Source of the DNA: Bugula neritina
Lineage: Eukaryota > Animalia > Bryozoa
Direction of reading: 5' to 3'
Assembly: GCA_964035545.1 (NCBI GenBank)
Contig: OZ037767.1
Coordinates: 15,194,998-15,258,997, forward strand
DNA length: 64,000 nt
The notes under the pieces were generated by a model. It ran no database searches and was not told the DNA's origin. It worked only from the letters and a program-made list of their open reading frames with translations. Positions 20,581-55,874 of this stretch are shown in pieces. Within the stretch, counting starts at the first letter, position 1; every line of letters begins with the position of its first letter. Made by a program: the position numbers and the translations under genes.

Positions 20581-22221
20581 GTCACCCCTACGCTGGTTTG
20601 CAGACGGATGACACTTGTTTCTGTGGAAGTGAGTACGACAAGTATGGAATCAGTGAAGAAACGAGCTGCAAAGACCCTTGCAAAGGAAACACTAGTCAGA
20701 TATGTGGTGGAGGCTGGAGAAACAGTGTCTATAAAATATCTGGAAAAGGTGCATAAAAAATGAACTCAAAATTGAAATTGAATAATTATACATTTCAATG
20801 CAAAAAAGAAAAATAAAAATATTGTTGATGCTTATTTACTATTATTTTATAGCCTAAAAATTTGTATATTTGCACCTAATTTTTCATAGAATTTTAATTG
20901 TAAAATATGCTTAGATTTAAAGTCACTTCAACAATGTATCAAACAGCTGAATTTTGTTTAAATATATACTGTAGAAAAGAATGAATCCAGCCAAAGTGTA
21001 CCAAGACCCATTCGCTATGTCGGCAAAATCGAAGTAGGAAAAATGACTGATGACATCATATCCTTTATTGAACATCCAACTGATTCTACTAAAATAATAG
21101 CAGCTACATCAAAACAACTTGTAGAGATCAATCATCATGGAGACTGTACAGTAGTAGCTGGTGTGCAGCTGCAAGGTTGTTTGCATACGCAAAACTCACT
21201 TTCATTTGCTTCCATCAGCCATACTGTTTATGCTCACTTCACTGATCTGAATATACATCACTTCCTGTTTAACAAGTCTGTCATCTTGGTGGCTGATGAA
21301 GGTGACCATTGCATTAAATTCTTTGAATTTCAACAGAAACCTTTGTTCTCTAATTTTCAAACCTACAAAATTGGCAATTGTGGAATTTCACAAGTATCCC
21401 CTCTGTTAGCTGGTAGGGTTCAACATTTCAACGAACCTCAAGCAATCAAGTTTAACAGCCCGAAACATCTTTCTCTGTACCATGACTCTGAAACTATTAG
21501 ACTGGCTGTTAACTGTGTACTGACTGAAGTATACTCTGTAATTATTAGTATCTATCCAACTCACACTGTAGCATATGAGTACAGTGGACACCCTGGGTAT
21601 GTAATTCACATGTTGAATTATTTTGATTTTCCAATGATGAAATCACAAGGATTTAGCAGTGTGGAGGGCAAAAGTGATTTTGCAAAAGTAGAATTGCATA
21701 TTGAGGATAATTTTGGTACATCAATTGAGGTTTATAGCTATACTTGTAAGTCAAATATCAGTTCAGAAGTTCCCAAAGTGTTGAATGATTTACCAACAAT
21801 ATTATTCAATGGTGAAGTTCGGTATTTAATTTACAATCATACTAGTCAGATACTGCTAATACCACCTATACAAGTTTTACATCTTCCTCTGGAAGCAGAG
21901 TCTAAACTGAGTCAGTATACTGTAGCACGTGATTCTCTCATACTCTACAGTCAAAGCCTGAAAACATTTTATTTCACAAAGAAATATTCTCAATATAAGA
22001 GAGTTAGTGAGAGTCAGTGTAGTCAGTCTATTATACAAAAGTTACAGGTGAATGGAGCTGAATCTTGTGCTTATGTCTGCTTTAAATATGGCGACCTTTG
22101 TGTTTACTTTTCATTTAATAGTGTAGACAACTTCTGTTATATTCATAATGAGGTCAGCAATACTAGTCTTATTACTACTCCAGGTTTCTACTGTTACACA
22201 TCTTTAAATTATATATTTTAA
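20581..22221 (+). CDS. WSC-NHL-PAN family copy A (5'-partial; signal/first WSC exon not found)
   Basis: Exon 20581-20748 (AG|..|GT; GHPYAGLQTDDTCFCG..C..PCKGN..CGGGWRNSVY, the second half of a WSC domain) and exon 20975-22221 (in frame with ORF 21043; VADEGDHCIK, FNSPKHL, ESCAYVC..C..FS....NFCYIH). Near-duplicate of copy D from ~20552 to ~22990. Confidence 0.75.
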
Positions 22222-25200
22222 ATGTTTAAACAATTTGTTTGCTCTTTTAACAACGATAATTTAGTAAGTTACCACACAAATAATAAATTATTGAATGGGT
22301 TTTCTGACAAAGAATAATAACTTATTAAATGGGTTTTCTGACAAAGAACATAATATCTTTCTGATGCTGGTAATATTTACAATTATATTTATGTTTACAG
22401 TATAATATCTATGTTTATTACAATATTTTAGTTATGTTGACATTTATACTATAGCTGCTGTGAATTTAATAAACAATAATCTCTATTCTACAATGTATTT
22501 TATCTCAATATATAAGTAAATATACCATTTTAATCAAAAAAGGAGAACAATAATCAATTAAGGTAATTGAAAGGGCACAACAGAAACCTATATTATATGA
22601 AATGGTCAGAAGAGGACAACTCTAGATAATCATAATATCCCAGTGATAATTTCAATTATTGACTGCAAATGCATATTATTTGTTTGATCAGACAATAAAA
22701 ATTCAATGACTATACGTTTTTAATATAAACAACAGCCATGTCTGTGTTTTACTAAATCAGCCAATCAAATAATTGCTAAAGTAACATTCAATTCTTTTAA
22801 CTAACTTATTATATTATTTCGTCAGTTTAAAACTCTAAAGAAGCATCCAATATTTTGAAAGACTAGATAATGAGTGCTTCTAGTAACATGTGACAGCATA
22901 AACTCTCATTGGTATCGCTGACTGTAGTATTATACTGAGTGAAAAACATTGAGGCACCAAAATAGTGAATTTTTTTACACTCAACTTTATTTGATATCTG
23001 CACAGAGAGAAATATTAGTGCAGTGCTTGCACTAAAATTGTTCAAAGAGCCTTTTATTGCCAGTATAGCCTGCACCACACCTCTAATATTTGTTAGACCT
23101 GCACTTATTTTGATGAAATTGAAAATTAATCCGATTAGTGTAAGCTGAAAAACATTTTGTAGTAGCTCTGAAACCACTTAGTTACTTTTCACAAGTATTA
23201 CGTAATTATCATCCCTAGGTTCTAATGAAGCTAAACAGTAATTGATAGGAGCAGAAAATGAGATCAATGCTACAACTACATAATGTTCAACTACATTATG
23301 TTCAAGCAAAATTTTATTTACATAAGAATTATGGAACAATCAGCAGTTGTTCACCTAACAACATTATTTGTTCACATTTACACTGATGATGATCACAAAC
23401 CTTTATAGGAAGCTAGGATAGAGTTGAACCCTACATTTGGGTCATTTCGATTGGTGCTTCCCAGTTAGATGCTATTTATACATTTTACGTGCAGTTTATT
23501 TGAATACTATTGAAATATATGTGCATTTAAATAAATTTGAGTCAATTGCTTTTTGTAATTGGCACACAAATAAATTTCTTTGCTCTGCATAAACCTATTA
23601 ATTTTGCATTTTCTATATTTTTTGCTTTTTGAAAAAATGTTATTATTAATGCATTTAATGCTTTTTTTCAACACAAATTTGGAAAAATTTAAATATTATT
23701 GCAAATATATCATATTAATGGTTATTTTATGTTCAGCAATGATATGAAAGTTATATAAGGGTATATAGGTATATAATAGTTAGCACCAAAACAAAAAATA
23801 CAACTTAACTGGGGAGCATATAAGTGGAATGCAACTCCATCAACCTACTGTTCATGATTTTGAAATTTCTATGAACCTAAGATATTTTCAAATAGCTTGT
23901 TACCAGACTACTATTAAACATTGCCCCATTCCGTTTATCAAAGACTAAGGCTGAAGTTGAATTTATTAACAAAAAAGTTCATCTGCACATATTATCTCTT
24001 GCATGGGTAGTTTAGGCTTCACTAGTCAATTTCATTCATGGAAAGGAAAGCCAACTAATTTAAAATGTGTGTAAAAGGGAGATCGGGGAGATGCACCATT
24101 AAACTCCAATGTACTCAGTTATTAGCAAATGTGTTTCAAACAAGAAGCTTAAAATTAATAACAAAACAAGCTACTGAATAGTCAAGTGTAGATCAGGTGA
24201 ACCACTTCAAAAGCCTAAGTAACTTGAGTAAATTACCTGGTGAAACAAAAGAAAACGTTGCATAACAAAGCTATAGTAAGGAAATATTTAAAATGTAATT
24301 CAAAGGCTAGAAACTGGCTTACCAAGCAGTAACAAAGCAAAGCAAAGGATATTACATAACAGCACATATTTTTCATTAACGGCTATTGACAGAAGAAACA
24401 TTCTGCAGGCATAGTGAACACCAGAAGCTCAGACTAAGAGGTTGTGCTTTGAGATTCAGTAACTTTGTGCTTCCAAACAACCTCACAACATGGAAGACAT
24501 TGAATCAGTTAATCACCAGGGTAAAGATTGCAGCTACTTCTCAGAGATAGAAGATGATCACTTTCTTTCAGAGTTAGAAACTAAAGCTGTTATTGCAATT
24601 TGCAGCAAAGGGTAAGCTCAATCATTTGCTTAACATTGTCGTTTGCTATCACAATGACAGTATGCATGAGTATGACTATTGCTATAGACAGATAATTGAA
24701 TTTGTGCAACTATAAATTTCCAGAGATCACATTGACTGATATTTCTCAAACTATTCTAATCCTATATCAATTTGATACGCCTGTTCCTGTAATCATTTAT
24801 TTCTAAAAAGTTTAGCGTTTTATTTCAACGTCATCTTCTAGCAATTTGTGCCAAATAATGCAGTTTAGAAGCCTACAACAGCTGCCAAGCTAACTTCTTG
24901 TTTTATACTTTATAGCTAAGTACCAAACTGAAAATGCCAAATTTAGTGGTGAGTTGGCAAAGTTCATAAATACAAGAACATTTTATTAACTTCCGTACCA
25001 CCAGTTTATTTTCTTATTTATTTTTGCACAGCACAATTAAATGCTGAAATAGAAAAAAGATGTTTGAATAACAATATTTTTCTTGGTAGTACTGTATTTG
25101 TTTTTCAGTTTATAGACATACTGAAACTTATTTCGATATAAGAGGCCCATATAAAATAATAAATAATCATCTTGAGTTTTATACGGGAACACATTTACTT

Positions 25201-28200: not shown

Positions 28201-28522
28201 TAGATTTGATTTTAAATGGTGAAAGTGCCAATTATGTGTATATACCATAGCGTGTCATTTCAAAGCATAGTTCTTCTGAAAATAATAAAAGTTGCTTTAC
28301 TTGCAAGCTGGTGCAGCCAATGATGTGAGTCAGATGCCGCCAACTGTTCTGCCAACTTGTACCTCAGTAGAACAGAGATCCTGTCAATCAGAGGCAGCCA
28401 TTCAGTAAGTTGCTCATCTGAATATATACAGATAAAACTTTTATTCAGGCTTTCTCTTCAAAGTTATTTATTTTACACTTCATGCACTTAACCATATTCA
28501 GATATACAAACAAATTAATACT

Positions 28523-28582
28523 GCATTCATTGTATGGGGCATTCATTGTATGGGGCATTCATTGTATGGGGCATTCATTGTG
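28523..28582. repeat. 16-bp tandem repeat x3.7 (GCATTCATTGTATGGG)
   Basis: Units start at 28523, 28539, 28555 and 28571. Confidence 0.95.
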
Positions 28583-28595
28583 TATACCACATATA

Positions 28596-28840
<245 letters not shown>

Positions 28841-28844
28841 TCAG

Positions 28845-31800
28845 CTGTCTCTTGAACTGTTTGTAAAATATTTGTATGGGCTGTTTTAGATTCCTTCTCA
28901 AGTTGTATGAGAAAGGGGACGCCACCTGCACTCAAATACAACAAATAGTTGAATCATCTGAAGCTTTGTTGCAGATGACAACAGCCTCTATTTGTAGAGA
29001 TGTAAATGATTTAATTAGGGAAATTGGCACTAACCACACTGAAAAGGTCACTACTTTGAATGAGACACTCCATAGCACTGCACTGACATTTGAAGGTTCA
29101 GAGACAGATTTTAAAAGGATTGTCGAGTTTAAAAAGCGAGGCTTGATCATGCCACAGAGGTACCTGGTAGGTAGTAGAGAAGATTCTTCGAAAGATGGCA
29201 CTAAAATTCAAACTCCGTGCTACGCCCAGTATGTGCCTCTCATTCAAACCCTTTCTAAGTTAAAAGGTACATCACCAATTCCTACAGTTGATGGCGATAT
29301 AATAGGTTGGTAGTCTCTATAAGAGTTCTAACTTTCTTCAACAACATTCAGATGCCCTTCAACTGGCTCTATACAATGATGACATAGAGCTGGCAAACCC
29401 TTTAGGTTCGAAAGCTGGTATTCATAAGCTTTCCATGTTTTATGTCTCTGTCAAGGGTAGAACTCCTTCTTAGTTGAAAGATATTCATCTTGTCATAGCT
29501 GCTTACACATCTGATCTCAAAGAATTTGGTTATTCAAAAATTTTGAAACCTCTCTTTACAGACTTACAGAAGCTAGAGCAAGGTGTTCAAGTAAGCTCTG
29601 GTGATTCAGGTACAAGGACTATTCAAGCGGTGCTCGTCCAGCTTATAGGTGACAATCTGGCGGCTAACCAATTACTAGGCTTTGTAGCCAGCTTTTCCGC
29701 TCAGCACTATTGCAGATTCTGCTATATGGCTCTTGATCAAGCAAAACATGCCGTGGAAAGCTCAAAAGATTTGCTGAGAAGTCAGGAACAACACTGTGCT
29801 GATGTGGCTGCAGTGGAGCAGGACGTTGATAATTATAAACACACTGGAGTTAAGCGATCTCTAATTCTTGACCAGCTGCAGAATTTCTCATCAATAGAAA
29901 GTACAGTGCCTGACTGCATGCACGATTTCCTAGAAGAAGTTTGTAAAACTGAACTGTCACTTATTCTAACTGCTCTGGCTAAGGAGAAGCTGCTTTCTCT
30001 TGAAATGCTAAATTCACGGATTAAATTATACAATTATGGGTGAGATATCTCAGCTAGGTGTATAAATAGAAGAGAGAGCATTTTTTTATATAAGATGAGA
30101 ATGGGATATAGATCATAGGTTTCAGTGCTCAATTGTTTGAGTTATAAAAAAAAACTCTTAGCTGAATGGAAACTGCTCAAAATTGCACGTTGATATTTTA
30201 TGCACTTTTACTAATGTTGAGCTTTATGTAATAGGACGCAGTTAGAGTATATGGGCTGGCTATGTAATGTTAGGTGCATCATGTGTGTTGTAAGTTGGGT
30301 GTTGTAAGTTGGGTGTTGAAGGTGATGTTAGAAATTGAAAATAGAAGTATATAGTTGAAGTTTAGGCTCGCTGCTATAGGATAGGCTATAATTATAGATG
30401 AGTTTTGGGTTTAAGTTTTGTAGAGAGGAATATATTTCTACAAAAAACTAGGGATGGTTTGAGCTAGTAGAATGTTATAATTATATGTAGTTTTGGTTGC
30501 TTTCTTATCAGAAAAACTTGTTAGCACCATGCAAATGATTTTATTGTAAATTGTTTCTTTTAAAGTTGAAACTATTGACATTTTCTGAATTATTTTGTAC
30601 TATTTGTGCAAATCATCTGACCTTTCTAACAAGCCTATGACAATACTGTCTCTGGACAAAATCAAGCAGACAGTAGTAGCAACTTGGTGTTTATAAGACT
30701 GTTGCCATTTTTTGTTGGACACCTAGTTCCTGAAGAAAACAAGTATTGGCAACTATATCTCTTACTCCGAGATGTCATGGATTTGATTCTTGCACAAACT
30801 CTGACAATAGAGAGTACATATGCCATGGAAGCTACCATTGCACTCCATCATTCAGTTTTTCTTGAGATGAGGCTTCAGTTGTGCACATGAATGCATACTA
30901 AGGATTGATTAACAAATTTGCACCACTTCCATATATATATAAAGATGTGTAGAATATAAGTACTGAGCTTTTTGTTGTTGTTTAAAGCTGAAAATTTATT
31001 GATTATTGGTTTGCAGACTTTTCCAGAAAGAAATCTTTCTCCAAAACACCATTTTATGACACACTACAGATTGAGAAGCGGTCAGAAAGCATGGCCCATT
31101 GATCACATATTGGTGTATGCGCTATGAGGGAAAGCACAGGATGGCTAAATCGGTTGCTGCTACATCATGTATGCAATAAATAATATTTATTTGTTAAGCA
31201 CAATATAAATAGTGTGTGGCTTGTTAGTCATAAACTGGTGATGTTGTCGCATTCTCTTGTGTTCTATGAAAAGAATACTCTTTGACTTTTACTTAGTTTT
31301 GCAGAAGTCATGTGTGAAGCTCATGTTAAAATGTTTTTGGGTTCTTTTTGTGCAACTTAGTTTATTTTATAGTCTATACACAAATAGTTCTTGCCATAAG
31401 AAAAGCAGGGCTACATGACCACACTCCCACTTATAAAAAAGTTTAAATTGTTGTTCTTTTAAAGTAAAAGAAAGCTGATGCAACTCATAATCAAGAGAGG
31501 ATAACTCTAGGATATAACACTGATGGTGATCATATAAATTGAAAAAAGCTTTTGTGCAAGATGAAATATATTTTTTATGGACACATTGAAAAAACTTGGG
31601 CATATTGATGTGCTTTCCCCCACCTGATACAATAAATTTTATTGTCAAGTTCAATGGGTGGTGATATGCTTATGTGCTGAAAATGAAGTGACTTACTATA
31701 TTGCATGACCTGGTTTGATTTTATGCTCCCAGCAGCATGTGTTTCTAACACAGTTGAATAAATCGATCAAGTTAATGTCTTTGAGCAGTCGTCTAATAGT

Positions 31801-32885: not shown

Positions 32886-32887
<2 letters not shown>

Positions 32888-32961: not shown

Positions 32962-32966
<5 letters not shown>

Positions 32967-34412
32967 AGGAAAAGAGCAATTTAATTATATAGATGTTGTT
33001 TTATTGTGCTACTAATAGTTTCATGCCTCTTCGGCACTCCCCAGGCACAATATTGACGAATTTAAATTTTTACATATATATATATATAGAGGAGCATTTG
33101 TCAAAAAAATTAGTAAACTCCTATACACATGTCAAGAAGAAAACTCTAAATGATACTTTATATTACAAGCATGGCATATCTACAACCCACATTATACTTT
33201 ACCATTTTAACTGACTGCTAGTTTTTTTTGTCAAGCCGCAGAAAAGCAAATCAGTTGTGTTTTGGGTTGCAAGTTCAAAGTAAAATTTTGTGTTGTATGC
33301 TATTAGAAAAATTTCCCATCATGATTCTCTTAGTCAATAATTTATGAAGGGCTTTAAGGCTTGCTGGAACAATAACTTATCATTTCAGCTGCAATAAAAA
33401 CAAATCAATGTGCTGAATAAAATAACTGTAGTTGTGACCACTTTTATGACTTTCACTGATACTCGGTAATGGCCAGAGCTGCACTACAGACTATTCAATT
33501 TGGCTATAAGAGATAGTGCAGTCTGGAACACAATGTAGGGTTCAAGGACCACCACTTTATTGTTCACCTTACCCTAACTACTAATAGAGCTTTGTGACCA
33601 TCATTAGTGCACATATGAACGAATATTGTTGTTAGGCGAACAACTGTCAATGGTTCCATAACTCTTATGTAAACAAAATTTTGCTTGAACATATTTAAAT
33701 GTAGCATTGATCTCACTTTCTGCTCCCACCAACTACTGTTTAGCTTCATTCAGACCTAGGGATGATGATTACGTAATACTTGGGAAAAGTAGTGTTGACT
33801 TAACAACTAAATGGTTTCAGAGCTACTACAAAATGTTTTTCAGCTTATGCTAATCGGATTAATTTTCAATTCATTCCATCAAAATAAGTGGATGTCTAAC
33901 AACTATTAGAGGTGTGGCAGAGGCTATGCAGACGATAAAAGGCTCTTTGAACAACTTAAGTGCATGCTGTGCATTAATATTTCTCTCTGTGTAAGGAACT
34001 ATATATAGTATGATATATAGGTGCATTGTTAAACCAAAGGTGCTTCATTGTTACTCAAACAAATTTATTTCTATTTTTTAATGAAAATGATCAATAGAAA
34101 ATATTCAAATAGTTTACAAAAAGCAGCAAAGCTCAGAATAATATTTATATTCTATGCCAGATCCATTACATAATACTGTTTAATAAATATGCATATTGTA
34201 TGTCAAGTGTTGGTTACCAATATATATGGAATACAAAATCAGATTTATATATCATAGGCCTATAGCTAAATATTTAGAGTTATACACAGTTAGCTCAAAT
34301 GTATATAAAGAGATATTACAGAAGAATAAAATGAAACTTTGGTTTAAAGAGATTAAAAAGAACATTTCAATATATATTACTGTAAAAATTAGGTTCAAAT
34401 CTTAAATAAATT

Positions 34413-37400
34413 CTAAATGAGCCAATAGCAAGTGGAACTTGAAGAATTTTCAAACACAACTGAAACCTCATTATGAATATAACATTTAGCTGTAGAGGTT
34501 ATTGAAAATGCTCCGCAATTTTCATATTGCACACTGCAAGCGTAGGCACATGATTCTATTGAGAGCTGTTTGAAAACCCCAACAGATTTATTGCTGCACA
34601 TGCCATCAGATAACGCTGAGAATCTTTTATGCTTTGGATGACTCATGTAGTAAAAAGTTTGAGAAGTTTTGCTGTAGACAATGAAATTATTCTCAGTTGA
34701 TGTGGCGGATATGAGGTCAAGGTCAGTGTTCAGACCAGTCACCACAACATCTACTAATCCAACATGGCCGCTACTCACTTTAAATCTCTTCAGTTTTCCT
34801 TTGTTTACAAACAGCTGTTGTCCATCCACAACAATAGGTATGCAATTGTTGCTGCACTCAAAGCTAACAGTATGGTGTGTCTGTGGACTAGAGATTTAGC
34901 TTCACAGGTTTTAATTTCGCTTGTAAGTGAAACAACTCCAAATGATTGGACTGTTGGATAATGAAAGTTGTTGGAAAAACTAGTTACAAAACCAAACTGA
35001 AGACCGTAGTAGCCATGTATAATAAAATATGAGGGATAGATGTTTAAAATTACGGAGTAGACATTATTGTTCTTCACACAATTTATGATTAGCAGTGTGA
35101 CGTCTGCAAAGTATGAAATTGCAAGGTGAGTTGGTGAATCAAGTCTAATGTCAGAGATTCGAGAGTATGTTTGGTATGCAATGAGAGTACCCGCTTCACC
35201 GCATTGACCAATCATAGCATAGTTTACATTTAGTAGGTCATCAAGATTTACTGCTTTTATACAGTGCTCTGATTGGTCGGCTACAAAAATAAACTGTTTC
35301 TTGTGAGATTGTAAAAGGTTGAATTTTGAGAGGTTGGCAAATATAATATGACTAATTAAGGTGAATGTGTAGGAATTTTGCAAATAAGCACAACCTTGTA
35401 GCTGCACACCAGCTACTACTGTACAGTCTCCATGGTGATTGATCTCTACAAGTTGTTTTGATGTAGCTGCTATTATTTTAGTAGAATCAGTTGGATGTTC
35501 AATAAAGGATATGATGTAATGGTTAGTCATTTTCTTGACCTCAATGTGACTAGTGGCCTGGTAAGGAGTGTTGATTGGACCGTCTGCTGAATCAATTATT
35601 AACCTTTGACCTACAAATAGGTACACATTGTATAAAACTCAGGTAGATTTTATATATCTGTAAGAACTACTGATGGAAAGGTTTTTTAAACGGACTAAAT
35701 ATTTGCTTTTTATAATCAGGGCACAAGGGCAATTATGACTAACATATTACCAATACGGCATTTATAACAGAAAATTGCTGTTTAACTCATATATAATATA
35801 GTAAAACATCCATTCAACAATTTTAGCAATTTATGAAACTGTTCATGTAAAAACCAAATTGAAGAATTTTATCCAGTATTGCTGTAATTCTCCAAAAGTT
35901 TTGTTAGTTTGTTGAAACTTCATCTTTTTGAATACCTTTATAATACTTTAAACAGACATTATATATGACTTGAATATTGATTAGCGCTACATGAATTAGC
36001 TTAGGGCTTGTTTGACAAAGATCAAATTCAATAATTAAATTATAATTATGTGTTAAATATTGGACTATGGTATGTTCAAATTTGTTTTATTATTCTAAAA
36101 CTTGTTTGATTTCATGCAAGTCCAACATTCTGGCCTCTAATGTAAATGAACAATTTTTATCATATCAACAAAGCGCTTATATAATGCAATAACTACATTC
36201 TTAGCAAAATGGCAACTTTCGAACGTGAGAAAATGAGTTTATTTGATTTTTAAAAAACTGTAACAATAAACATTTCCTTGATAGCACTTTTGCAATATAG
36301 AATATTTAATTTAAATTGCGGTACCTTATATGGACTGCGGTAGGTATTGTATGAGTTAAGTTTTTTTTATACTTTAACAATTTCTAGTCAGAAATTCAAT
36401 GTTGCAGAGTTAAAATTTCTTCAAGTTGCATTGCGTTATGAAAGTCACTCGTAAAAAAACTTAATCGGCCGAGTTCAAAATAACAATCAAAAGGAGCAAT
36501 AACTTTTTGTAAACATCATTATTTAGTTATGACTTGAGCGACTATAGATGACATTCTAATATGTTTATAAATATATTGCCAACGCTTTCCCAATTATCAC
36601 TTTTATGCTGTCAGCTTTGTTAGTTCAGGACGTTTTCAAAGGAAGTGAAATAGCAACTTTCTTCTATAATATTATAGTAACATGCTCTGATTACAAGTCT
36701 ATGATCTAAACTGCGAAATGTTATGGTTACACAGATTGTGAATTTAAGTTGCATGGCAGGAACAAATATATAACAACTTTTAGAATATATGCTTGTCTAT
36801 TAATACTGGTCTTATAAAACACCAGTCTTATATTACTGGTCTTATAAAACACCAGTCTTATATTAATTACTGGTCTCATAAAGCTGGTCCTATTAAACTC
36901 CTCCTTTATTACTAGTCCTATAATATAATACCGGTCTTCTTAAAATGAGCTGGTCCATAATACTGGTCCTATAATATATACTGATCCTACATTACCAGCT
37001 ATAGGCCTATAGTAAACTAGTCCTATATTACTTATATAGTCCTACATTACTGGTCCTATATAATACAATAAACTGGGCCTATATAATACTAGTCCTATAG
37101 TGTTGGTGCTACAATACTGCATGGTTTTATAATAAGCTGGTCTCATAGTACTGGTTCTATTAAAATGGCTCCATAACATTGGCCCTATCACCCACAATAT
37201 ATCTATAAAAATAATTGATTTATATATTATATATAGCTGAATAATTAGTATATCATAGTTTATTATAAATAGAAACAATAACAATTAATTTGAAGGACAA
37301 CTGTTTATAAACCAATCACATTACCTGGGAAAGTCTTGTAGATACTGTTCCTCCATGTTCCACCACACATTTGACTACTGTTCCCTCTGCATGCTCTACG

Positions 37401-37909
37401 ACACTCAGTTTCCCCTACTTCACCATATTTGCTGTATTCAACACCACAGTAACACTGGTCAGTAGATTGTACTCCTGCATATGGCTGCCCTGAAATTAGT
37501 AATTTGCTAATTGATCTTTATAAATATAACAACACGATAAATCACAAAACACAATTTTTTTATAGTTCAGCTACAATTGGCAGATTCAAACTTATATGCC
37601 TTTGTCGTGTAAAATTGAAGAATACTGAAATCGATGAAAATTAAAAATAAACTTTTTCAAAGAATCAACATTATCATTATCAGGTATAGTAAGTTCTTAC
37701 ACAATATTTTTGGTATACTGCAGTTATTTTTGAAAACAGTTATGAAAAGATTTACCTTGTATAGTGCAGTAGCCAATACAAAGCTCTACGGTCATCAAAT
37801 GAGTTGAAAATCCTATGGGTAACGCTCTGTTCCTAGAGTCCTTGTAACAACCAATCAGCTGGTTGAGAGTGTACACCAGATTCCAACACAGCCACAGTTG
37901 CAGCAGCAC
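34413..37909 (-). CDS. WSC-NHL-PAN family copy B (one frameshift; start codon unresolved)
   Basis: Exons: ~37909-37756 (LLQLWLCWNLV..IGCYKDSRNRALP..MTVELCIGYC|GT); 37489-37325 (GQPYAGVQSTDQCYCG..CGGTWRNSIY); 35610-34413 (VADQSEHCIK, LDSPTHL, ESCAYACS..CGAFS..KCYIH). Adding one T to the T3 run at 34895-34897 joins ORFs 35626..34805 and 34829..34413. Confidence 0.75.
36800..37160. repeat. Degenerate ~16-20 bp minisatellite (TAATACTGGTCCTATA-like) in an intron of copy B
   Basis: More than 12 occurrences of a CTGGTCC/CTAGTCC/CTGGTCT core. Confidence 0.8.
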
Positions 37910-43900: not shown

Positions 43901-45086
43901 GTAGCCCAGTGTTAAGCAACAAGATATAGCTCATAGTTAATTTGGACATTCAGCTAGAAGCCATGTAGGCTTGATTGGACTCTTCAGAGTTTAGACTGTA
44001 TACAACAGGAAGCAAATAGAATATTTATAGCACAGGCTCACGTTCTAACCTTTTATATATAAGTTCCAACTCACTTCAATGAGTGTTGATTAATGCTTGT
44101 ACTAGTACCAAAGGGACAACACGAGTACTATAGCTTTATTAGAAACTTGCAGCAATCAAATCCTTTACCCAAACTCAAAGCAGTCACACAAAATACTGCA
44201 TATCTGCCCCTTACAGCTACCAATAAATTCGCACACACATAACTATCTTACCTACACAAGTCTCTTTACTATGCTAAGCTATTGGGCCGTCTGTAACTGA
44301 TAGTAAGAGTCAGCACTAAGCAGTCAATTTTAGTTTTTAGTTAATGCAACTAAAAATGATTTTAATAATAAAGGTATTATTGGTTTAAGGTTAGTCAATA
44401 GTATTGAGCAGATATATATAAATAGTCTAGCCTGAAAACATTATGTTTTGAGAAGAGAGCATCTCTCTAAACTATTTGTTGCATCTGCATTCTAAGTTAT
44501 TTAAATAATATCTGCATTATCATTTCAAAAGTTATAGTCAATAATTATTTCATTAGACTAGCCAAATAGATAAATATTGAGTAAAAGTATAAACATTTAG
44601 CTTGCTTCCAGAATCTGAACTAGTTTTACATTGTTCGCTGAACAGAAGTGATGAAAATCATCTGTTTTTGTGCATCAAGTATATTATTGTACATGAAATG
44701 AACCATGCACCAGCCTGTTGTAACAATGTGATGGTGAGGCGTGCCACGATCACGTGCTTGCTCAATAGATAGTGATAATGGTTGCAATGGAAATATAGGC
44801 GCAGCCCTAGCTAATGTGTTGGTTTGTTAGCAATTGTTCAACCTCATGCTAAATTATAACAAGTAGGCAATACGCATGCCGCCCACAGAGCATTAGCATT
44901 AAGGAACTGAGACTAGATTATGAGATGATTTTTTGCTGGGGATGACCTTAACTATGCTGTGAAGAAGCTCTGAACATTAGTGAAATTAGTATTTCATTAT
45001 CAGAAGTGGTTGGTGCGTGTATATTAGTAAATGACTATACTGTATTCCATGTGTGCATATAACTATTCAAAAGACTCTCTAAAAAT

Positions 45087-45406
<320 letters not shown>

Positions 45407-45440
45407 AAGTAAACAAAGAATTTGTTATATCAGAGTAGAG

Positions 45441-48400
45441 ATGAAGAATATTCTAGAAATATACGCTTTGATTCTCCTGATACAACATGTGACTACTTCA
45501 GAATACATGGGATGTTATAAAGATAAAGGAGAGAGAGCATTGCCTTTAGTCACTAAAGTTACTAATATGACGATAGACTTTTGTATAGGCTACTGCATCT
45601 ATAGAGGTAAGGAGAATATGACGTAAGGCTGTTTTTCTATTTAATATATTATACCGTAATTATATAAACTTTATTACATATGTAATGTATTAAAATTGTG
45701 ATTTTTTTTACACCAATTATGTGACTAATATTACCTTTTTCCTAAACATAATAAGCATATATTAATATTATATTATATTCTCAAACAGCAATTATATTTT
45801 TATTATGTTGTTCTCATCCAGCTCTATAATACTTATGGCATCTTGATATTTAATTATTTTTGTACAGCAACTATATAAACATTATATAATTCTTGTATAT
45901 AGTAGTTATATAAATGTTACATTATTATTGTTTGTTTTTGTTTGTTTGTTTTCTTTATTTCCATCAAAAAAAAACAAAAGGACAAAAAAAAATACAAATA
46001 TACAACAGTAACACAAAAGGAGCTAAATTCAATTTATATATAATATCAATTGAAGTCAAGATGGGGGCCCATGTGCTCAGTAGCATAGCTATTCAAGGAG
46101 CGGGGCCCAAGTGGCAGTTGAAAAAATAGTGGGAACTATTTATTCAGATTAAGTTAAAGATTTTAGTAGGTGCTTTTTCAACAATATTTTAAATGTGGCA
46201 AAGCTTTGATGATGTCTTAAAGTCAGAGGTAGCTTATTCCAATTGCTAGACATCTGGTAGGACACTTGACGATGTATATTAGATATATAAACATTATATC
46301 ATTATTCTATTGTAATTATATAAATGCTATCTGTATATTTTAGGCCAGAGGTATGCTGGTTTTCAGGATGGCAGAGAATGCTTCTGTGGTACAACCTTTG
46401 ACCTCTATGGAGCTCTAGACGAATCAAGTTGTAGCAGTAGTTGCCCAGGGAATACGAATCAAAAGTGTGGGGGACGATGGGCAAACAGTGTATACAGAGC
46501 ACTGTCAGGTATGATGAGACATTTTCAAATAAAATGAGAAAGGTTTTTAGGTAATACATGAAATTGAATTTTTTTAATCTTCAAAAGACTTATCAAATTT
46601 TATTTAACCAAGTATTTAATTTCACAGACGATTGTTATTCTAAAAAATCGGCTGAAAGATATGGAGTGCCAAATGGTCAAAAATTGCTTATTATTGCATC
46701 TCATATGCTTATAATAAAGTATCTAACCATTATTCTCTCTCATATGCTCACAAAACGCTCTCATTGATCTATAATTTGCTCTCATACCCTTATTATTTGT
46801 GCTCTTAGGTCTATTATTTGGTCTCATACTGTCATTATTCATTCCCATACCCTTATTTCTCTTCCTTTTATGCTCATTATTCAGTCCCATACCTCCATTA
46901 TGCACTCTCATACCCCTATTATTTGCTCTGTTATAGACATTCATTCTCTTATGCTTATTATTCTCTCTCATACCCTTATTACTGTCTTGCTTTTGCGCTT
47001 GATTCTGACTCACTAGTATTCGTGTACACGTCACAATAGTTGAGTATATGCCAGTCTATTCGGGTCACACTACTAAGCTCCACCCCATTTATCAAATCTG
47101 ATTGGATAACTGCAATGACACTAAGCCTAGGGCCACACTGTGCGTATTTTCGAATGCGAAAATTAAAATCACAAGTAGCAAAGGTGTCCACTGTGCGCGT
47201 TGAGAAAACATTCGCACTTGTCGCTCTGCATTTTCAACGCAAGTGCGAATCGTCTCTGTCATCGTCACCTAATTGGCTGGTAGTTATTCAGCGAGCCCAA
47301 TTTCTTTATTTAGTGCTATATTCCAGTAAATTGCGTTTTATTGAAAGCTAGTGCGATTTAAAAATGAAAGCTTTATTTATCACGCATCACTGACGCTACA
47401 GTGGACACCTTTGCTACTTGTGATTTTAATTTTCGCATGCGAAAATACGCACAGTGTGGCCCTAGGCTTAGTGTCATTGCAGTTATCCAATCAGATTTGA
47501 TAAATGGGGTGGAGCTTAGTAGTGTGACCCGAATAGACTGGCATATACTCAACTATTGTGACGTGTACACGAATACTAGTGAGTCAGAATCAGGCGCAAA
47601 AGCAAGACAGTAATAAGGGTATGAGAGAGAATAATAAGCATAAGGGAATAAATAATGTCTATAACAGAGCAAATAATAGGGGTATGAGAGTGCATAATGG
47701 AGGTATGGGACTGAATAATGAGCATAAAAGGAAGAGAGATAAGGGTATGGGAATGAATAATGACAGTATGAGACCAAATAATAGACCTAAGAGCACAAAA
47801 AATAAGGGTATGGGAGCAAATTATAGACCAATGAGAGTATTTTGTGAGCATATGAGAGAGAATAATGGTTAGATACTTTATTATAAGCATATGAGATGCA
47901 ATAATAAGGGAATTTTTGACCATTTGGCACTCCATAGATAGAGAAATAGCTTTTAAAGGAATATTTAAATAATTAAACTCAATTAAGAAAGTTTGAATGA
48001 TTTGACCTTGCTTCTGACAAAAAATATTAATACCATAATTATTTAATTATTAACAAATAGTAATTTGTTTAATCTATAGCTACATTGTTTATTTTATTTC
48101 CACACTCTTGTAAGCAACAGTATGGTATAGTACAGTATTCATGTTTTTTGGTAAATTGTGTAAAATTTTTGTAACTTTATGGTAAATTATAATAACTTTG
48201 CTACTTTCAATATGCTAAATAAGTGTACATATCTTTATTATGTCCAAGTTTGCTGACTTAGATAATTATGTATGTTTTAAGATATATGTAATACATATAT
48301 AGTTTTAGTAATACTTTCTTCTGTGTTTTTGTGGGTTTCTAGAATCATACTTTTATTGTTACACCATTTATTATTATACTATTTTTAGAAAATGTCAAAA

Positions 48401-49632
48401 CACGAAAAAACAAACCCGCAAACTTAGTCCACATCAGAAATATTGAAGTTAGAGAAATAAGTGATGCCATCATATCCTTTATCGAACATCCGGCTGATTC
48501 TACTAAAATATTAGCAGCTACATCAAAACAACTTGTAGAGATCAATCACCATGGAGACTGTATAGCAGTAGCTGGTGTGCAGCTACAAGGTTGTGCCTAT
48601 CAATCGAATGAATTTTTTTTTTCCTCAATCGGTCATTTTATTTATGCCCATTTCACCAAACTGAAAGTCTCTCACAGTCTTTTCAACAAATCAGCCATTT
48701 TGGTTGCTGATGAAGGTAATCACTGCGTAAAGTTTCTCATTCTACAAGACTTATCATCTTTTGAGTTTGACAATTCAATAAATGACTACCATGTTGGTAA
48801 GTGTGGATCTTTTAAAAAAGAACTTTTGACTGAAAATCTTCAAAATTTAATTGATCCTAAAGAAATGGAGCTGAACAGCCCAAAACATCTTACTCTGTAC
48901 CATGACTCTGAGACTATCAGACTGGTTGTTAACTGTGTGCTGACTGAAGTATACTCTGTTATTGTTAGTATCTATCCAACTCACACTGTAGCATATGAGT
49001 ACAGTGGACACCCTGGGTATGTAACTGATGTTTCTGAAAATCTCTATTGGCCATTATTTCGATCAAAAGGATTGAAAAGTCTTTCAGCTGATAACAGCAC
49101 TTCATTAAACCAAATCCTTGTCGTTAATGGGAGTTACACAACTACTGCAAATTATTATTGTGATTCCAGGAACAGTTCTGCTATTCCCAGACTGTTTCAA
49201 AGTTGGCCTTTAGTAATTGCAAATGGTGAATTGAAATCCCTGGTTTATAATTCGACAAGCAGTGAAATCAAACTAACTAACATAAATATTGCTAATCTTT
49301 CTACAAAAACATCCCCTGAGTTTAACCTGTTCACTACAACAAAGGAATCCAATCATATTATTCTCTACAGTCAAAGCCTAAAGAAATTTTATTATGCAAA
49401 AGCATTTTCTCGCTATCGGAAAATTCTGGAAATGTCCTGTAGTAAATATGTTATAGAAAAAGCAATTGTGGGTGGACCTGAAAGTTGTGCTTACATCTGT
49501 AGTAAATATGGTAGTCTGTGTGTTGCTTTTTCTGTTAATGATTATGATAATTCTTGCTACATTCATGACCACTTCGACTTGGCCGATGCCTACATATCTA
49601 ATGACTCAGCTTGTTATTTATCTATATCATAA
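45441..49632 (+). CDS. WSC-NHL-PAN family copy C, complete, 524-aa secreted protein
   Basis: Exons 45441-45606, 46344-46508 and 48389-49632 (1575 nt, canonical GT-AG, phase-1 introns). Signal-like [20 protein letters not shown]; [37 protein letters not shown]...CPGN...[10 protein letters not shown]; NHL-like [10 protein letters not shown] and LNSPKHL; PAN-like ESCAYIC..CVAFS..CYIH. Confidence 0.9.
45925..46275 (-). mobile_element. 5'-truncated L2/CR1-group LINE 3' end in intron 1 of copy C
   Basis: The minus strand encodes [33 protein letters not shown], a typical ORF2 C-terminus. It is followed by a GGGCCCC..GGGCCCC stem, AATAAA and a (CAAA)n-like tail. Confidence 0.7.
46660..47936. mobile_element. 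1.28-kb non-autonomous foldback DNA element with ~535-bp near-identical TIRs, in intron 2 of copy C
   Basis: 46660-47194 is the reverse complement of 47398-47936 (TATGGAGTGCCAAATGGTCAAAAATT..). The arms contain ~21-bp subrepeats. Flanked by GA..GA (or a TA TSD if the element starts TGGAG). The mirrored ORFs in the track confirm the symmetry. Confidence 0.9.
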
Positions 49633-49793
49633 TTATAACATATAATTGCATAGTTGAACACCACTTTCTGATGACAACATTGATGATGCTTTACTCTAAC
49701 TTATGTTAATTTTTAATAATCATAATTATATTATTTTCATTCACTTAAATATTTTATGGAAATGATACACAGTGGTTTTTAAAAATTATATGT

Positions 49794-49795
<2 letters not shown>

Positions 49796-49863
<68 letters not shown>
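49796..49863. repeat. (TA)n microsatellite downstream of copy C
   Basis: Pure TA run. Confidence 0.97.
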
Positions 49864-49867
<4 letters not shown>

Positions 49868-50304
49868 TACTATATATACAGAGTCTATACTATTTATTAC
49901 AGACGGTAGATTGCTATATTATATTTGTGTATCAACAAATCAATAAAATAAAAATCGAAGATATTGTTTATTTGAAGCTTTTTTGGAAATTTATTATAAA
50001 TATTTGTAGGTTGTGTAATTACTGATCTATAAATAATATTTATAACAGATGGTTTTATTATAATTTTTAGGTGATATTGTTTTAAAGAACATAATATGTA
50101 TTAATTCAATCAAATTTATTTGACTCACAAGAAAATGCAGCACAATTATTTGTGAATTAAAAACTTCTTATTAAATAAAGATTGAGTAATAACCAAATCA
50201 GTATATTTTAACTATTGGTACTTATATAAGAGAGTAAGTTAAACAGAAACGTTCATCTTTGCACAGATACTTGCAAGAATATCTATATATAGTGTATATA
50301 GAAC

Positions 50305-50510
50305 TTTATAGATATAGAAAAGTTATAGATATAGAATAGTTATAGATATAGAATAAGTATAAATATTAAATAGTTATAAATATAGAATAGTTATACATTA
50401 GATATAAAATAGTTATAGATATAAAATAGTTATAGATATAGAATAAGTATAAATATTAAATAGTTATAAATATAGAATAGTTATAGATATAAAATAGTTA
50501 TAGATATAGA
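50305..50510. repeat. ~17-bp minisatellite (ATAGTTATAGATATAGA)
   Basis: About 11 degenerate copies with a repeated higher-order block. Confidence 0.85.
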
Positions 50511-52877
50511 AGTGCAGCAGTCAATAATTTAAACAACTTTACAAACACATCATTATATATTATATACACAAACATTCACCAGATATATTTAATACTTTAT
50601 GATGCACATGGTCAAACATGCAATTAATATTGCTAATATTTGCTTATAAATACAATCATACTAATATTGTTTACATGACTGCATTTGTTGAAAAGAATGG
50701 TAATAACAGTTATAAAAGACAATTAAAATTTTTTACTGGGTTATGTAATATACTTTGTTTATCTGTTGCTTTTAATTACCAAATATCTAAAATAATATTT
50801 TAATGAACACAAAGTTATTCACTGTTTTACAAATTTGTTTTCTTATGATCAATAGGTTTTTCCACACTTTTTAAATCTGTAAAACAAAAATTTTTTGATT
50901 TAATAACTAAATATTAAACAGTGTCTGTTTACTTTTTTAAAAATAGACAGTGTTTATTTTAATCATTCTCAAGAAACTTAATTAGGTAAAAAGTAAATTA
51001 TTAAAAATTGAAAAACAATTGCCAAATCCAAGATACATCAATTCAATATTACATTTAAATTTATAAGACAAATGACTTTTTGTTTTTGATGATAGATTTT
51101 TGTGTTTCATTATGCAAGCTCTTTTGTAAAAAATGTTTTTATAGTTATTAATATATTTTAAGAAATGATTACAGTTTCAAAAGTGGTCAAATTACTGCAG
51201 CTGTTTGGCTTCAGTGAAACGACTCTTGTTGCTTAAAGCTAATGGGCTTTGAAATTATGTTTGTTATAGAAGGATTATTAATATAAATATCTAAAGGAGC
51301 TTATAGACTAAAACTTAGTGCCTTGTAATTAAATATTATTTTACAGATATCCTATAAAGACTGACATATAACTCACAACAAAAAAGCTTTCATGTTTGAA
51401 TATTGGAACTGAAAATTATTGATTAATTTTTAATTTTTAATATATAAACAAAACATGGAAGTTTACCATACATTTAAAATTTTTAAGCTACAAAGCAACA
51501 CTAAGTGCAACAATTTCAGACCAGCTATAGAGATCAAATCTTGAAGACTAAAATTATCCAATCTTGTCAAGATACTAAAATCAGGTATTATGATAAATAC
51601 ATATATATATCTACATTTAGCTTTCTATGTTTCACCTTTTACATACAGTTTATAGGCTTTATGATTTATAAATTTTATATTATATTCCACATTTTACACT
51701 CTATATTTTATATTCTGATTTTTTGTATCGCATATTTAGTATTTTATGCTCTACGTTTCACCTTCCAGGTGTGACATTCTACATTTCAAGTTCTACATTT
51801 TGTATTCTAAATACCTATCGTATCATATTAGAGGTAATGTCTTATATATTTTAGTAAAGTGAGCGTAATATCACAGCCTCGCACTTGAAGTATAAATTTT
51901 ATAAGAATGTAAGATGTTATAAAATTAGTTGGGTGATAAAGTTTGAAAATGTACAATAGCATGAAGTTAATAATTATTCTAGTATTGATGAGCCATAAGT
52001 TTATTTTACAAGTTGTTTTTATTATGAGCTGATACGTTTATTCCTATATAAGCGTTACAAGTGTTAGGATTGTTAGAATAACAAAAAAATAGTTTTTCTC
52101 TGTAAATTATTAAAACGAGATCTTGAAATTATTAATTGAAAGTTTTTTAGGAGTTTATTCAAACTTAATATAGTTTTATAAAACAGGTTTAGTAGTTATC
52201 ATGTTTAACTTGGAAACCTAAGAAACTTTTATTTAATAATACATTTCAAAATGTTAAGATATTATTCTTTACTAAAATGCCTATATTGTATATAAGGCAA
52301 TAACATTTTGCAAATTTTTATTAGCAGATGACAATTTAAATACCAATACGTTCTTATTTACACTATAATGGTGCCATCCCAGCTAGGTAGACGCTATTTT
52401 TTATTTTGGTACCATATAACTATATATATAGTAATGTATCCCTATATAAAATATATACCTAAATAACTGTTGTATTGATTGCTAAATAGCTAAAATGCTA
52501 ATAGCCATACTATATAATAGGTAACATGAATTATCTGAAATAATATTCTAATTTTCACAGATTTGTGTGGGACAGAAAATAGTATAATAGACATTATAAT
52601 AGACATTACCTTTAATTAATGAATACTCATTAACATAATATCTGTTCAAACAAGGAGCAAAATATATTCAAAATTGATGTTAATGCAAATCAAAGAAATT
52701 AATAATGTGCTAAATATGTGCTTCATTTAAATATACATATATATTTCAATAATATTAAAATAAATTGCACATAAAATATATATTATACCAAAATAAATAA
52801 TTAGCGTCTAACTGAGAAGCGTCTATCTAGGATAACACAAGAACAAACTGTTTTTATTACTAGCAGCTGTCTAGAAG

Positions 52878-55874
52878 ATGCATCAATATTTGATGTGTAT
52901 AGCACTGGTTCCTATAGTTTATGGTTCAGTGTACATGGGTTGTTACAAGGACACCTCAACTAGAGCTCTACCATTGAGGTATGATTCTAATGACATGACA
53001 GTCGACCTTTGTATTGGCTACTGCATTTACAGAGGTTAGTATTCCATTCACTTACTAAGTTGATTTTTTACAATATAGTGAAATTACAACCTATGAAGCA
53101 GAGCTAATAAATTAGCCATCAATTTAGGAGTAACTCACAATATCTTGAAACTTCCAAAGGAATTGCAATTATCCTGACATAAGATTGCTACATACTTATA
53201 CGTAAAATTATTGCTGTGCTTGCTTTAAAATTTAGACATTTTACCTGAGCTACAGGTATTTAAATAGGGCCATGCAGTTGGTATCTATAGCATAGTAAGT
53301 CGCAGTGGTCTAGGGGTCAGAGCGTTTGCCTACAAGTAAGCACAAAGTAATGGGTTTGAGCCCCATTATAAGCCAGTAGCGATGTTAGGAAGAGCATCCA
53401 GTCATAATTGCTCCTGTGCCTCATATGAATAAGTCTTAAGCCAGCTTTAACAAAAACCCCTTCTATCAGAGATCTTCTCATAGGTATGGTGACTATAAAC
53501 TTGTGTGAGTTGGTATATATTAGCATGTGTGCACATAATAATATATCCAAGAAAATTTGCATGTCGCAATATATATTGAATATCTATATAACTTTGAAAT
53601 CTATAGCTAACTAGTTGTTTGATTGGCTATAAATATCATATTACAGTAAATTATTTAAAGTGAATTGATTATATCAAATTAATATGTTAGCAAGCATATA
53701 AAAGTCAACTAATATTAATAATCGCCTTAGTTGTAAACTGATTCAAAAAATGTAAATAAATCAATAGAGAAAGTTTATGCATACAAGCAATTAGCTGCTT
53801 GTTATATTTGTTCAGTAAGTGTAAATATTATACATGTTCAGAAACTGCTTGCTTAAATTTAGCTAATTAATAGCAAGTATAAACATTTTGTTATTTATAT
53901 AAATGCTATGATATTAAGTTTATCAGAGGAAAATTCAATTACACAATTATTTGACTAGTCCTAAAAAAGTTTATGAATATTAAACTTAATTAAAGAATGC
54001 TCAAATAATAGTTTTTTAATCAAAGTTTTATTCACATTAACTAGAAAGCCCAGCTCTCTATCACTATATAGCCATGATATATTTGCTAAAATTTTGGGAA
54101 AAAGTAATTATGTTATAATGGCAAAATTGCTACTTATGTTTTCTAGTACATATATATGCTCATTAAACCATAATTTCTATTCAAATAAAATGTTGACATG
54201 AATATTAATCAACCCTGCTGGTATTTCAAGGTCACCCCTACGCTGGTTTGCAGACGGATGACACTTGTTTCTGTGGAAGTGAGTACGACAAGTATGGAGT
54301 TGGTGAAGAAACGAGCTGCAGAGACCCTTGTAAAGGAAATACTAGTCAGATATGTGGAGGAGGCTGGAGAAACAGTGTCTATAAAATAACTGGGAAAGGT
54401 ACATAAAAAATCAACTCAAATTGAAATTGAACAATTACATTTCAATGCAAATAAGGAAAATAAAAATATTTTTGATGCTTATTTACTATTATTTTAAAGC
54501 CTAAAAATTTGTATATTTGTACCTAAATTTTAATAAGATTTTAATCGTAAAATATGCTTAGATTTAAAGTCACTTCAACAATGTATCAAACAGCTGAATT
54601 TTGTTCAAATTATATATACTGTAGAAAAGAATGAATCTAGCCAAAGTGTATCAAGACCCATTCGCTATGTCGGCAAAATTGAAGTTGGAGAAATGACTGA
54701 TGACATCATATCCTTTATTGAACATCCAACTGATTCTACTAAAATAATGGCAGCTACATCAAAACAACTTGTAGAGATCAATCATCATGGAGACTGTACA
54801 GTAGTAGCTGGTGTGCAGCTGCAAGGTTGTTTGCATACGCAAAACTCACTTTCATTTGCTTCCATCAGTCATATTTTTTATGCTCACTTCACTGATCTGA
54901 ATTTACATCACTTCCTGTTTAACAAGTCTGTCATCTTGGTGGCTGATGAAGGTGACCATTGCATTAAATTCTTTGAATTTCAACAGAAACCTTTGTTCTC
55001 TAATTTTCAAACCTACAAAATTGGCAATTGTGGACTTCCACAAGTATCCCCTTTGTTAGCTGATAAAGTTCGACACTTTAGTGAACCTCAGGCAATCATG
55101 CTGAACACCCCAAAACATCTTTCTCTGTACCATGACTCTGAGACTATCAGACTGGTTGTTAACTGTGTGCTGACTGAAGTATACTCTGTTATTGTTAGTA
55201 TCTATCCAACTCACACTGTAGCATATGAGTACAGTGGACACCCCGGGTACGTTATTACCGACATGTTAAATCATTTTGATTTTCCAATGATGAAATCACA
55301 GGGATTTAGCAGTGTGGAAAACAAAAGTGATTTAGCAAAGGTTGATTTGCATATTGAGGATAATCTTGGCAAATTAATCGGGGTTTATTTTTATTTTTGT
55401 GAGTCAACTATTAGTTCAGAAGTTCCCAGACTGTTAAATGATTTGCCAACAATATTATTGAGTGGTAAAATTCAGTATTTGATTTACAATCATACTAGTC
55501 AGGAGCTGTTCATACGGAATTTACAAATTTTACATCTTCCTCTGGAAGCAGAGTCTAAACTGAGTCAATATACTGTAGCACGTGATTCTCTCATACTCTA
55601 CAGTCAAAGCCTGAAAACATTTTATTTCACAAAGAAATATTTTCAATATCAGAGAGTTAGTGAGAGTCAGTGTAGTCATTCTATTATACAAAAGTTACAG
55701 GTGAATGGAGCTGAATCTTGTGCTTATGTCTGCTTTAAATATGGCAACCTTTGTGTTTACTTTTCATTTAATAGTGTAGACAACTTCTGTTATATTCATA
55801 ATGAGGTCAGCAATACTAGTTTCATTACTACTCCAGGTTTCTACTGTTACACATCTTTAAATTATATATTTTAA
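52878..55874 (+). CDS. WSC-NHL-PAN family copy D, complete, 524-aa secreted protein
   Basis: Exons 52878-53034 ([45 protein letters not shown]), 54231-54398 and 54625-55874. Total 1575 nt, GT-AG, phase-1 introns at the same positions as copy C. Confidence 0.9.
53299..53445 (+). mobile_element. tRNA-derived SINE fragment in intron 1 of copy D
   Basis: A-box-like TGGTCTAGGGG and B-box-like GGTTTGAGCCC, followed by GTTAGGAAGAGCATCCAGTC, which resembles a conserved central domain of invertebrate SINEs. Confidence 0.5.

Follow-up and report, generated by a model that had tools for sequence, protein, structure and literature searches.

The 64,000-nucleotide stretch of the Bugula neritina genome analysed here (the window; contig OZ037767.1, hereafter C3, positions 15194998-15258997, i.e. 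C3:15194998-15258997 in a 216-Mb animal genome) contains four copies, A to D, of a gene family whose members join a WSC domain, a predicted six-bladed NHL-like propeller and a PAN/apple domain. Among the four, copies C and D look functional by their sequence. We consider it probable that the family encodes a soluble, multivalent extracellular binder, and not an enzyme, which would bind glycans or proteins and bridge or coat glycan-bearing surfaces. Its secretion, its ligands, its lack of catalysis and its biological role are what we infer from the analyses presented below.

The four gene copies share a three-exon plan

The window is AT-rich (~31% G+C). Its four large open reading frames (ORFs) are paralogous and correspond to the last exons of A, B, C and D. 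When the window was searched by tblastn with the last exon of D, the matches were D itself (100% identity), A (88%), C (48%) and B (44% and 33%, in two frames). WSC-coding exons were found upstream of all four last exons: exon 2 in A, B, C and D, and exon 1 in B, C and D. The genes thus follow a plan in which the WSC domain is encoded in two halves, the first by exon 1, together with a hydrophobic N-terminus, and the second by exon 2, and in which a single large last exon encodes the rest of the protein. According to the splice sites, which were read by eye, both introns are phase 1, have GT/AG borders and interrupt the same codons across the paralogs. Intron 1 cuts the WSC domain of B, C and D at one glycine codon, the G that closes CIGYC..(R/Q)G and precedes (H/Q)(P/R)YAG, and A retains an acceptor matching this intron.

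Gene D, on the + strand, consists of exon 1 (52878..53034) with the ATG, a signal-like N-terminus and the first half of the WSC domain, exon 2 (54231..54398) with the second half, including the CGG motif, and a last exon (54625..55874) that ends in the stop codon and was characterized with a structure model, VIA-align and a PAN profile (see below). The last exon encodes a linker (residues 1-10), the propeller (residues ~11-342, nt 54657-55652) and the PAN/apple domain (residues ~347-411, nt 55665-55859). Gene C, on the same strand, has an equivalent exon 1 with ATG and hydrophobic N-terminus (45441..45606), exon 2 (46344..46508; splice sites read) and a last exon for linker, six-bladed propeller and PAN/apple domain (48389..49632), supported by the ORF, tblastn and the acceptor. 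The exons of D (157 + 168 + 1250 nt) and those of C (166 + 165 + 1244 nt) both add up to 1575 nt, corresponding to 524 amino acids. In an intact member (C or D) the WSC domain and the propeller are separated by a linker of ~25 residues. The tblastn matches and the reading of the DNA thereby confirm three elements of a preliminary description of this region: four paralogs with a common exon structure, a phase-1 intron that splits the WSC domain of B, C and D within the same codon and whose matching acceptor is retained in A, and predicted spliced products of 524 amino acids for both C and D.

Self-BLAST revealed an inverted repeat within intron 2 of gene C (46660-47197 / 47394-47936), whose arms of ~540 nt are 97% identical and lie ~200 nt apart. 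It is probably a foldback-type mobile insertion, outside the coding gene. Long (TA)n microsatellites are present at 45031-45438 and 28482-28944. The former stops ~35 nt upstream of the ATG of C, so that the proximal promoter region of this gene is almost pure TA repeat.

Copies A and B are damaged

Copy A (+ strand) retains exon 2 (20581..20748), with its AG acceptor and GT donor, and a last exon encoding propeller and PAN domain in an open frame (20975..22221; PAN_1 E value 5.8e-4). A search of the window gave no match to exon 1 anywhere upstream of exon 2 of A. The block of homology between A and D starts at 20552 and 54202, respectively, ~30 nt before exon 2, and A therefore lacks exon 1, being 5'-truncated, because its duplication block starts at this point.

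Copy B lies on the - strand. Its exon 1 is an open frame encoding a hydrophobic stretch and the first half of the WSC domain (37756..37909; WSC profile positions 2-34), and is followed by exon 2 (37325..37489; splice sites read) and a broken last exon (34413..35610; acceptor read) in which two ORFs overlap in different frames. When B was aligned with three intact B-type copies located elsewhere in the genomic array (see below), a 1-nt deletion became apparent between 34874 and 34873. This deletion shifts the frame, so that the propeller part ends early, and explains the two overlapping frames. In addition, exon 1 of B has no in-frame ATG and is directly preceded by a TAA stop codon. Neither an in-frame ATG nor an upstream exon was found for the B-type exon 1 in four copies, i.e. 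that of the window and three others.

PAN-fold modules are predicted at both ends of the protein

The Pfam WSC family (PF01822) has a gathering score of 27.8 bits. The exon 2 pieces alone score above this value in all four copies (A 39.8, B 37.4, C 41 and D 39.7 bits; profile positions 40-82), and the exon 1 pieces match profile positions 1-35 with 23.2 (D), 18.6 (C) and 17.0 bits (B). WSC domains are defined by eight conserved cysteines and a CGG motif (PMC9024836). The WSC domain of D has eight cysteines, three encoded by exon 1 and five by exon 2, together with the C-G-G motif. Since the WSC domain adopts a PAN/apple-type fold (PMC9024836), the family protein would carry a PAN-fold module at each end of the propeller. 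This gives some support to the view, put forward in the preliminary description, of a two-ended lectin-like molecule built on a propeller core.

For the C-terminal domain, the Pfam PAN scores of D (20.7 bits) and A (20.1 bits) fall just below the gathering score of PF00024 (21.4 bits), and those of four other family members (P0009, P0026, P0034 and P0099) lie above it (22.3-26.9 bits). A PAN profile of the family matched the N domain of HGF (E value 7e-6) and plasminogen (4.5e-4). A model of the PAN domain alone, made with AlphaFold2 (AF2), had a predicted local distance difference test score (pLDDT) of 81 and matched the PAN domain of plasminogen with a template-modelling (TM) score of 0.73-0.74. 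All 50 structural neighbours listed for this model were of the PAN/apple type, and they included apicomplexan apple lectins and the PAN module of a fungal copper oxidase. Cysteines C349, C365, C369, C376, C388 and C407 are invariant in an alignment of 20 last exons, and in a wider PAN alignment including four distant members four of the six remain invariant, the other two occurring in at least 90% of the sequences. Hence the six-cysteine apple pattern is present, and its cysteines presumably pair as disulfides.

The proteins are probably secreted, without a membrane anchor. By eye, the N-termini of C and D show a methionine, a hydrophobic core and small residues at -3/-1 before the start of the WSC domain. 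The last exon encodes 12 cysteines, an even number, and five to seven N-glycosylation sequons. No membrane-helix-like stretch was detected in the last exon outside the modelled strands, and its most hydrophobic 19 residues (Kyte-Doolittle value 1.77) form two propeller strands in the AF2 model. These results agree with an earlier observation that C and D have a hydrophobic N-terminus and no evident transmembrane segment.

The middle region is predicted to form a six-bladed NHL-like propeller

A structure was modelled with AF2 for the last exon of D, on the basis of an alignment of 20 sequences of paralogs and relatives. The model is all-beta (pLDDT 76; predicted TM score 0.73). With the whole model as query, Foldseek returned generic propellers only (WD40, BamB; TM 0.3-0.5), and the six-bladed NHL class was revealed only by VIA-align. 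In an exhaustive VIA-align search the leading matches were all six-bladed propellers, with NHL types ranking first: the teneurin-like NHL protein 9ifo (Z 18.6, 267 residues aligned), followed by NHLRC2 (Z 17.2 and 16.8), teneurins (Z 16.1-16.5) and TRIM71 (Z 16.2). Six-bladed enzymes follow closely, which makes the assignment within the propeller clan soft.

At the sequence level, no Pfam NHL match (PF01436) reached the gathering score of 20 bits; the best one, in C, scored 12.6 bits (E value 0.15), and D gave no match. Only one of the six blades is recognizably NHL by sequence (Brat, E value 0.009), and one blade was aligned with a true NHL protein by hhalign (E value 1.8e-4, probability 49%). 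Moreover, positions 98-160 of the family profile match true NHL proteins, namely P0027 (E value 3.7e-13, 10 stretches), P0049, P0066 and P0070, all of which carry Pfam NHL at 99-977 bits. We conclude that "NHL-like six-bladed propeller" is a fair name for the modelled domain, although its scores stay below those of strict Pfam NHL members. The NHL-like propeller that had been proposed for the middle region is accordingly upheld, AF2 and VIA-align together giving a six-bladed fold of NHL type.

Conservation along the propeller is uneven. Among seven subfamily representatives the mean identity is 0.54 in blade 1 and 0.21-0.24 in blades 4-5; blades 1-3 are conserved family-wide and divergence is fastest in blades 4-5. 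The propeller has six cysteines, four of them invariant in the alignment and two present in at least 90% of the sequences.

The structural matches bear on the possibility that the family consists of targeted enzymes, in which a catalytic six-bladed propeller of the lactonase, lyase or sugar dehydrogenase kind would be docked on polysaccharide by the WSC and PAN domains, in the manner of the fungal AA5 oxidases and of WSC-GSDH proteins. The enzymes found by VIA-align (Z 14-17) comprise a quorum-quenching lactonase (Z 17.4), the RPA3624 lactonase (16.7), PAL (16.4), Drp35 (16.3) and glucose dehydrogenases (14-15). Fungal oxidases have a WSC or PAN_1 domain before their propeller, and clusters of the ESM Atlas join WSC with glyoxal oxidase and WSC with GSDH. 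However, the non-enzymatic NHL-type propellers rank first in VIA-align, and no enzyme family was significant by sequence. In addition, the invariant or nearly invariant polar residues are found in blades 1-2, mostly at NHL-motif or structural positions, and invariance elsewhere is confined to Cys, Pro, Gly and aromatic residues. No tetrad of acidic residues or Asn and no His triad is conserved across the blades; H33, H82 and H164 each vary in some members. The lack of a conserved polar constellation across blades, together with the lack of a significant enzyme family, weakens the enzymatic explanation, which we regard as rather improbable.

The genes belong to a large and turning-over array

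The last exon has at least 43 matches in the genome, and ~31 of these loci lie within C3:15.148-15.897 Mb, a region of ~750 kb. A few further copies are present on C1, C2 and elsewhere on C3. The family is among the bigger tandem arrays of its chromosome, and a unit of a B-type gene (-), a C-type gene (+) and a D-type gene (+) repeats along the array. An upstream WSC exon was present in every paralog examined, including those on other chromosomes. The region had been described as a four-gene cluster; the four copies are real, but they do not form a cluster of four, being part of the ~31-locus array, and only C and D among them are intact.

A family tree, built with a quick method, contains distinct clades of D-, C- and B-type sequences, each with a sister from the metagenome of a related bryozoan (P0001-P0003), and places a protein of Watersipora outside. 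The three subfamilies are old. P0001 is equidistant (82-85%) from all D-type copies, which implies that the latter multiplied, or were homogenized, after the split from the species of P0001.

Self-BLAST of the window showed that 21053-21180 of A and 35517-35390 of B are 98.4% identical, although these paralogs are otherwise distant. This similarity belongs to a tract of ~130 nt in blade 1 (IISFIEHP...GVQLQGC), located at 21053-21180 (A), 35390-35520 (B), 48468-48600 (C) and 54700-54830 (D), in which the DNA of the four copies is 95-98% identical. Elsewhere, protein identity among A, B, C and D is only 35-50%. Copies A and C also share a second tract with 90% identity (21419-21604 and 48839-49024, respectively). 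Near-identical tracts shared by distant paralogs point to gene conversion, which appears to affect the part of the protein that is most conserved. A copy of the last exon of D is present ~628 kb away (L004, C3:15877667-15878911) and differs from it by only one amino acid (synonymous divergence, dS, 0.004). Either the segment was duplicated very recently or the assembly contains a duplicated haplotype.

The ratio of nonsynonymous to synonymous substitution rates (dN/dS) among D-type copies is 0.26-0.66, and it is below 1 everywhere among recent copies and also in comparison with the related-species homologue. We also scanned windows of eight D-type sequences, seven from the genome and the related-species homologue, for the corresponding ratio of proportions of differences (pN/pS). 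There was no sign of positive selection in these eight sequences, the ratio being at most 0.77 across all windows, with the maximum in codons 121-150. Among young copies the amino-acid sequence diverges most in codons 241-300 of the last exon (pN 0.11-0.13; pN/pS 0.67-0.76).

These data are relevant for two other explanations. In the first, the array would be mostly dead DNA, a decaying set of pseudogenes whose open frames are young by chance. Apart from the frameshift in B and the truncation of A, at least five other last exons have stop codons or are split, and B-type copies have no start codon. Nevertheless ~24 last exons are open over ~400 codons (the remainder being interrupted or truncated), dN/dS is well below 1, also against the related species, and both the subfamilies and the exon plan are kept in other bryozoans, as described below. 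We therefore find this explanation hardly credible. In the second, the proteins would be determinants of allorecognition or symbiont choice, i.e. polymorphic labels of self and non-self for colony fusion, or symbiont selectors, with blades 4-5 as specificity surface. A large tandem array with birth-and-death turnover and gene conversion in a colonial animal would suit such a role, as would the concentration of divergence among young copies in codons 241-300. On the other hand, pN/pS remains below 1 in that region and at its peak, and the family proteins appear to lack a membrane anchor, which, to our knowledge, known invertebrate allorecognition receptors possess. We give this possibility little credence.

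Relatives are found in other bryozoans

An exhaustive profile search of 1.84 billion representatives yielded 34 proteins with E values below 1e-10, ~25 of which matched end to end. A word-indexed protein search with the last exon of D returned three unnamed metagenome ORFs only, word-indexed searches with P0026 and with the alignment detected no further relatives, and a shape search of the ESM Atlas gave weak rows only. When thirty relatives were looked up, the sole named one was XP_067941510.1, an "uncharacterized protein" of Watersipora subatra. This is a true homologue (profile E value 3e-44) with WSC domain, propeller and PAN domain, and its gene likewise has three exons with the intron at the same position within the WSC domain. 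It differs in being only ~24% identical to D in the last exon and in having no tandem partner within 10 kb on either side. The NCBI model of this protein begins at an internal methionine in the WSC domain (L025:9941-10072 of OY755164.1). Because the frame is open upstream, through the GCY start of the WSC domain, the annotation is probably truncated at the N-terminus.

Another relative, on a contig labelled BRYA16, also has WSC exons, and no WSC exons were detectable around the more distant metagenome members. The related species retains the three subfamilies together with the exon plan, and the exon plan is also retained in Watersipora. By these sequence comparisons the family is of bryozoan lineage and is conserved in a second bryozoan, between two distant cheilostome lineages.

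Proposed function

We propose that the family proteins are probably soluble binders that act outside the cell. The WSC and PAN domains, both of PAN fold, would hold glycans or glycoproteins, chitin and beta-glucan-like polymers being the best-documented WSC ligands, and the propeller would offer a third binding surface. One molecule could thus connect or cover surfaces that carry carbohydrates, for instance those of microbes, of the cuticle or of adjacent tissue. The family would expand and decay by tandem segmental duplication of the B(-)/C(+)/D(+) unit, accompanied by gene conversion. Pattern recognition, agglutination and allorecognition, the roles that had been suggested earlier, are guesses. 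A more elaborate scenario, speculative and in our opinion unlikely, is that the array provides a bryozoan-specific, diversified recognition of non-self or symbionts. In this scenario blades 1-3 would signal or oligomerize, blades 4-5 and the PAN-fold modules would set the targets, and gene conversion and birth-and-death would build the repertoire.

Several observations weigh against this proposal. Strong structural neighbours of the propeller include enzymes, and WSC domains fused to propeller enzymes are known. The dN/dS values fit a relaxed or an ordinary binder and give no positive sign of a recognition arms race. The signal peptide was assigned by eye. Two of the four window copies are defective, B by its frameshift and A by the loss of exon 1, and the array may be dead in part, given that no start codon is visible in B-type genes. 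In the only public sequencing run found (X1) introns and intergenic DNA were covered alike, in short contigs without splice joints; this run is DNA-like and carries no information on expression.

The same domains would also be compatible with a structural instead of a defensive protein of the cuticle or matrix, which would build or organize the zooid wall with its chitin, or an adhesive of larvae or adults, with the WSC and PAN domains as anchors and the propeller as cross-linker. Bryozoan body walls contain chitin, and the high copy number and mild purifying selection of the family would fit this role. Furthermore, WSC domains bind chitin and beta-1,3-glucan (PMC11611005), and PAN domains are among those of lophotrochozoan skeletal proteomes (PMC13425148). 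Against it, we found no bryozoan skeletal or cuticle proteome naming family proteins in the literature searched, and the members of this family are compact, globular three-domain proteins, unlike structural matrix proteins, which tend more towards low complexity or repeats. We regard a structural role as unlikely.

Other features of the window

Between A and B an inverted pair of sequences of ~430-450 nt (23001-23429 / 33562-33991) is 81% identical; they may represent a dispersed repeat present in two copies or mark the borders of a duplication block that was rearranged. Two adjacent ORFs of 145 and 189 amino acids, also located between A and B (28876-30043, + strand), have no Pfam match and may represent remnants of a mobile element or of an unrelated gene. 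An ORF of 358 amino acids on the - strand (61898-62974) encodes ankyrin repeats (Pfam Ank_2, E value 2e-42) and has internal DNA repeats at 62137-62833.

Significance and comparison with known systems

Bryozoans are a large phylum that has received little study, and next to nothing is known in molecular terms about their immunity, their recognition of colonies and the way they deal with symbionts. The three modules of the family are all well known as extracellular binding modules, and we found no description of them in this order. If its members bind microbial or cuticular glycans, they would constitute a new class of invertebrate lectin-like effectors and a natural example of a propeller with a PAN-fold module on either side; if they are enzymes, they would extend the fungal plan of carbohydrate module plus propeller enzyme into animals. 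In both cases the gene models of C and D can be taken directly into expression and binding experiments.

According to the preliminary description the architecture was not recognizable from any named protein. In agreement with this, no paper describing a WSC-propeller-PAN architecture or bryozoan WSC genes was found in the literature searched, and the sole named relative is uncharacterized. The statement has to be restricted, however, since fungal oxidases with WSC or PAN domains and a propeller are known and a combination of NHL and PAN possibly occurs in rotifers. The latter concerns ESM Atlas clusters of rotifer proteins of 460-540 amino acids with NHL repeats and PAN_1 by automatic annotation and with no WSC domain listed; the likeness is a weak lead, as the language-model scores (0.79-0.86) are below the reliability line of the Atlas.

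Kremen1/2 and other animal WSC proteins resemble the family in having an extracellular WSC domain with eight cysteines and a PAN-type fold. Kremen differs in being a type I transmembrane protein, with the domain order kringle-WSC-CUB and without a propeller or PAN/apple domain. Structurally, the middle domain is closest to the NHL propellers of teneurins, teneurin-like proteins and NHLRC2 (Z 16-18.6, ~265 residues aligned, six blades), and the NHL sequence motif is common to one blade of the family and known NHL propellers. Teneurins, however, are very large membrane proteins with YD shells, and their NHL domain is not flanked by WSC or PAN domains.

The fungal AA5 copper radical oxidases (e.g. 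PorAlcOx and the Colletotrichum graminicola oxidase 6RYV) are secreted proteins in which an N-terminal WSC or PAN_1 domain is attached to a propeller. Their WSC modules bind xylan, chitin and beta-1,3-glucan, and the domain docks the protein on xylan, chitin or beta-glucan (PMC11611005); the PAN module of a fungal copper oxidase is, as mentioned above, a structural neighbour of the family PAN domain. In contrast to the propeller described here, that of the AA5 oxidases is a seven-bladed, kelch-type copper enzyme followed by a C-terminal beta-barrel and without sequence relationship to the family, and these oxidases have a WSC or a PAN domain but not one at both ends.

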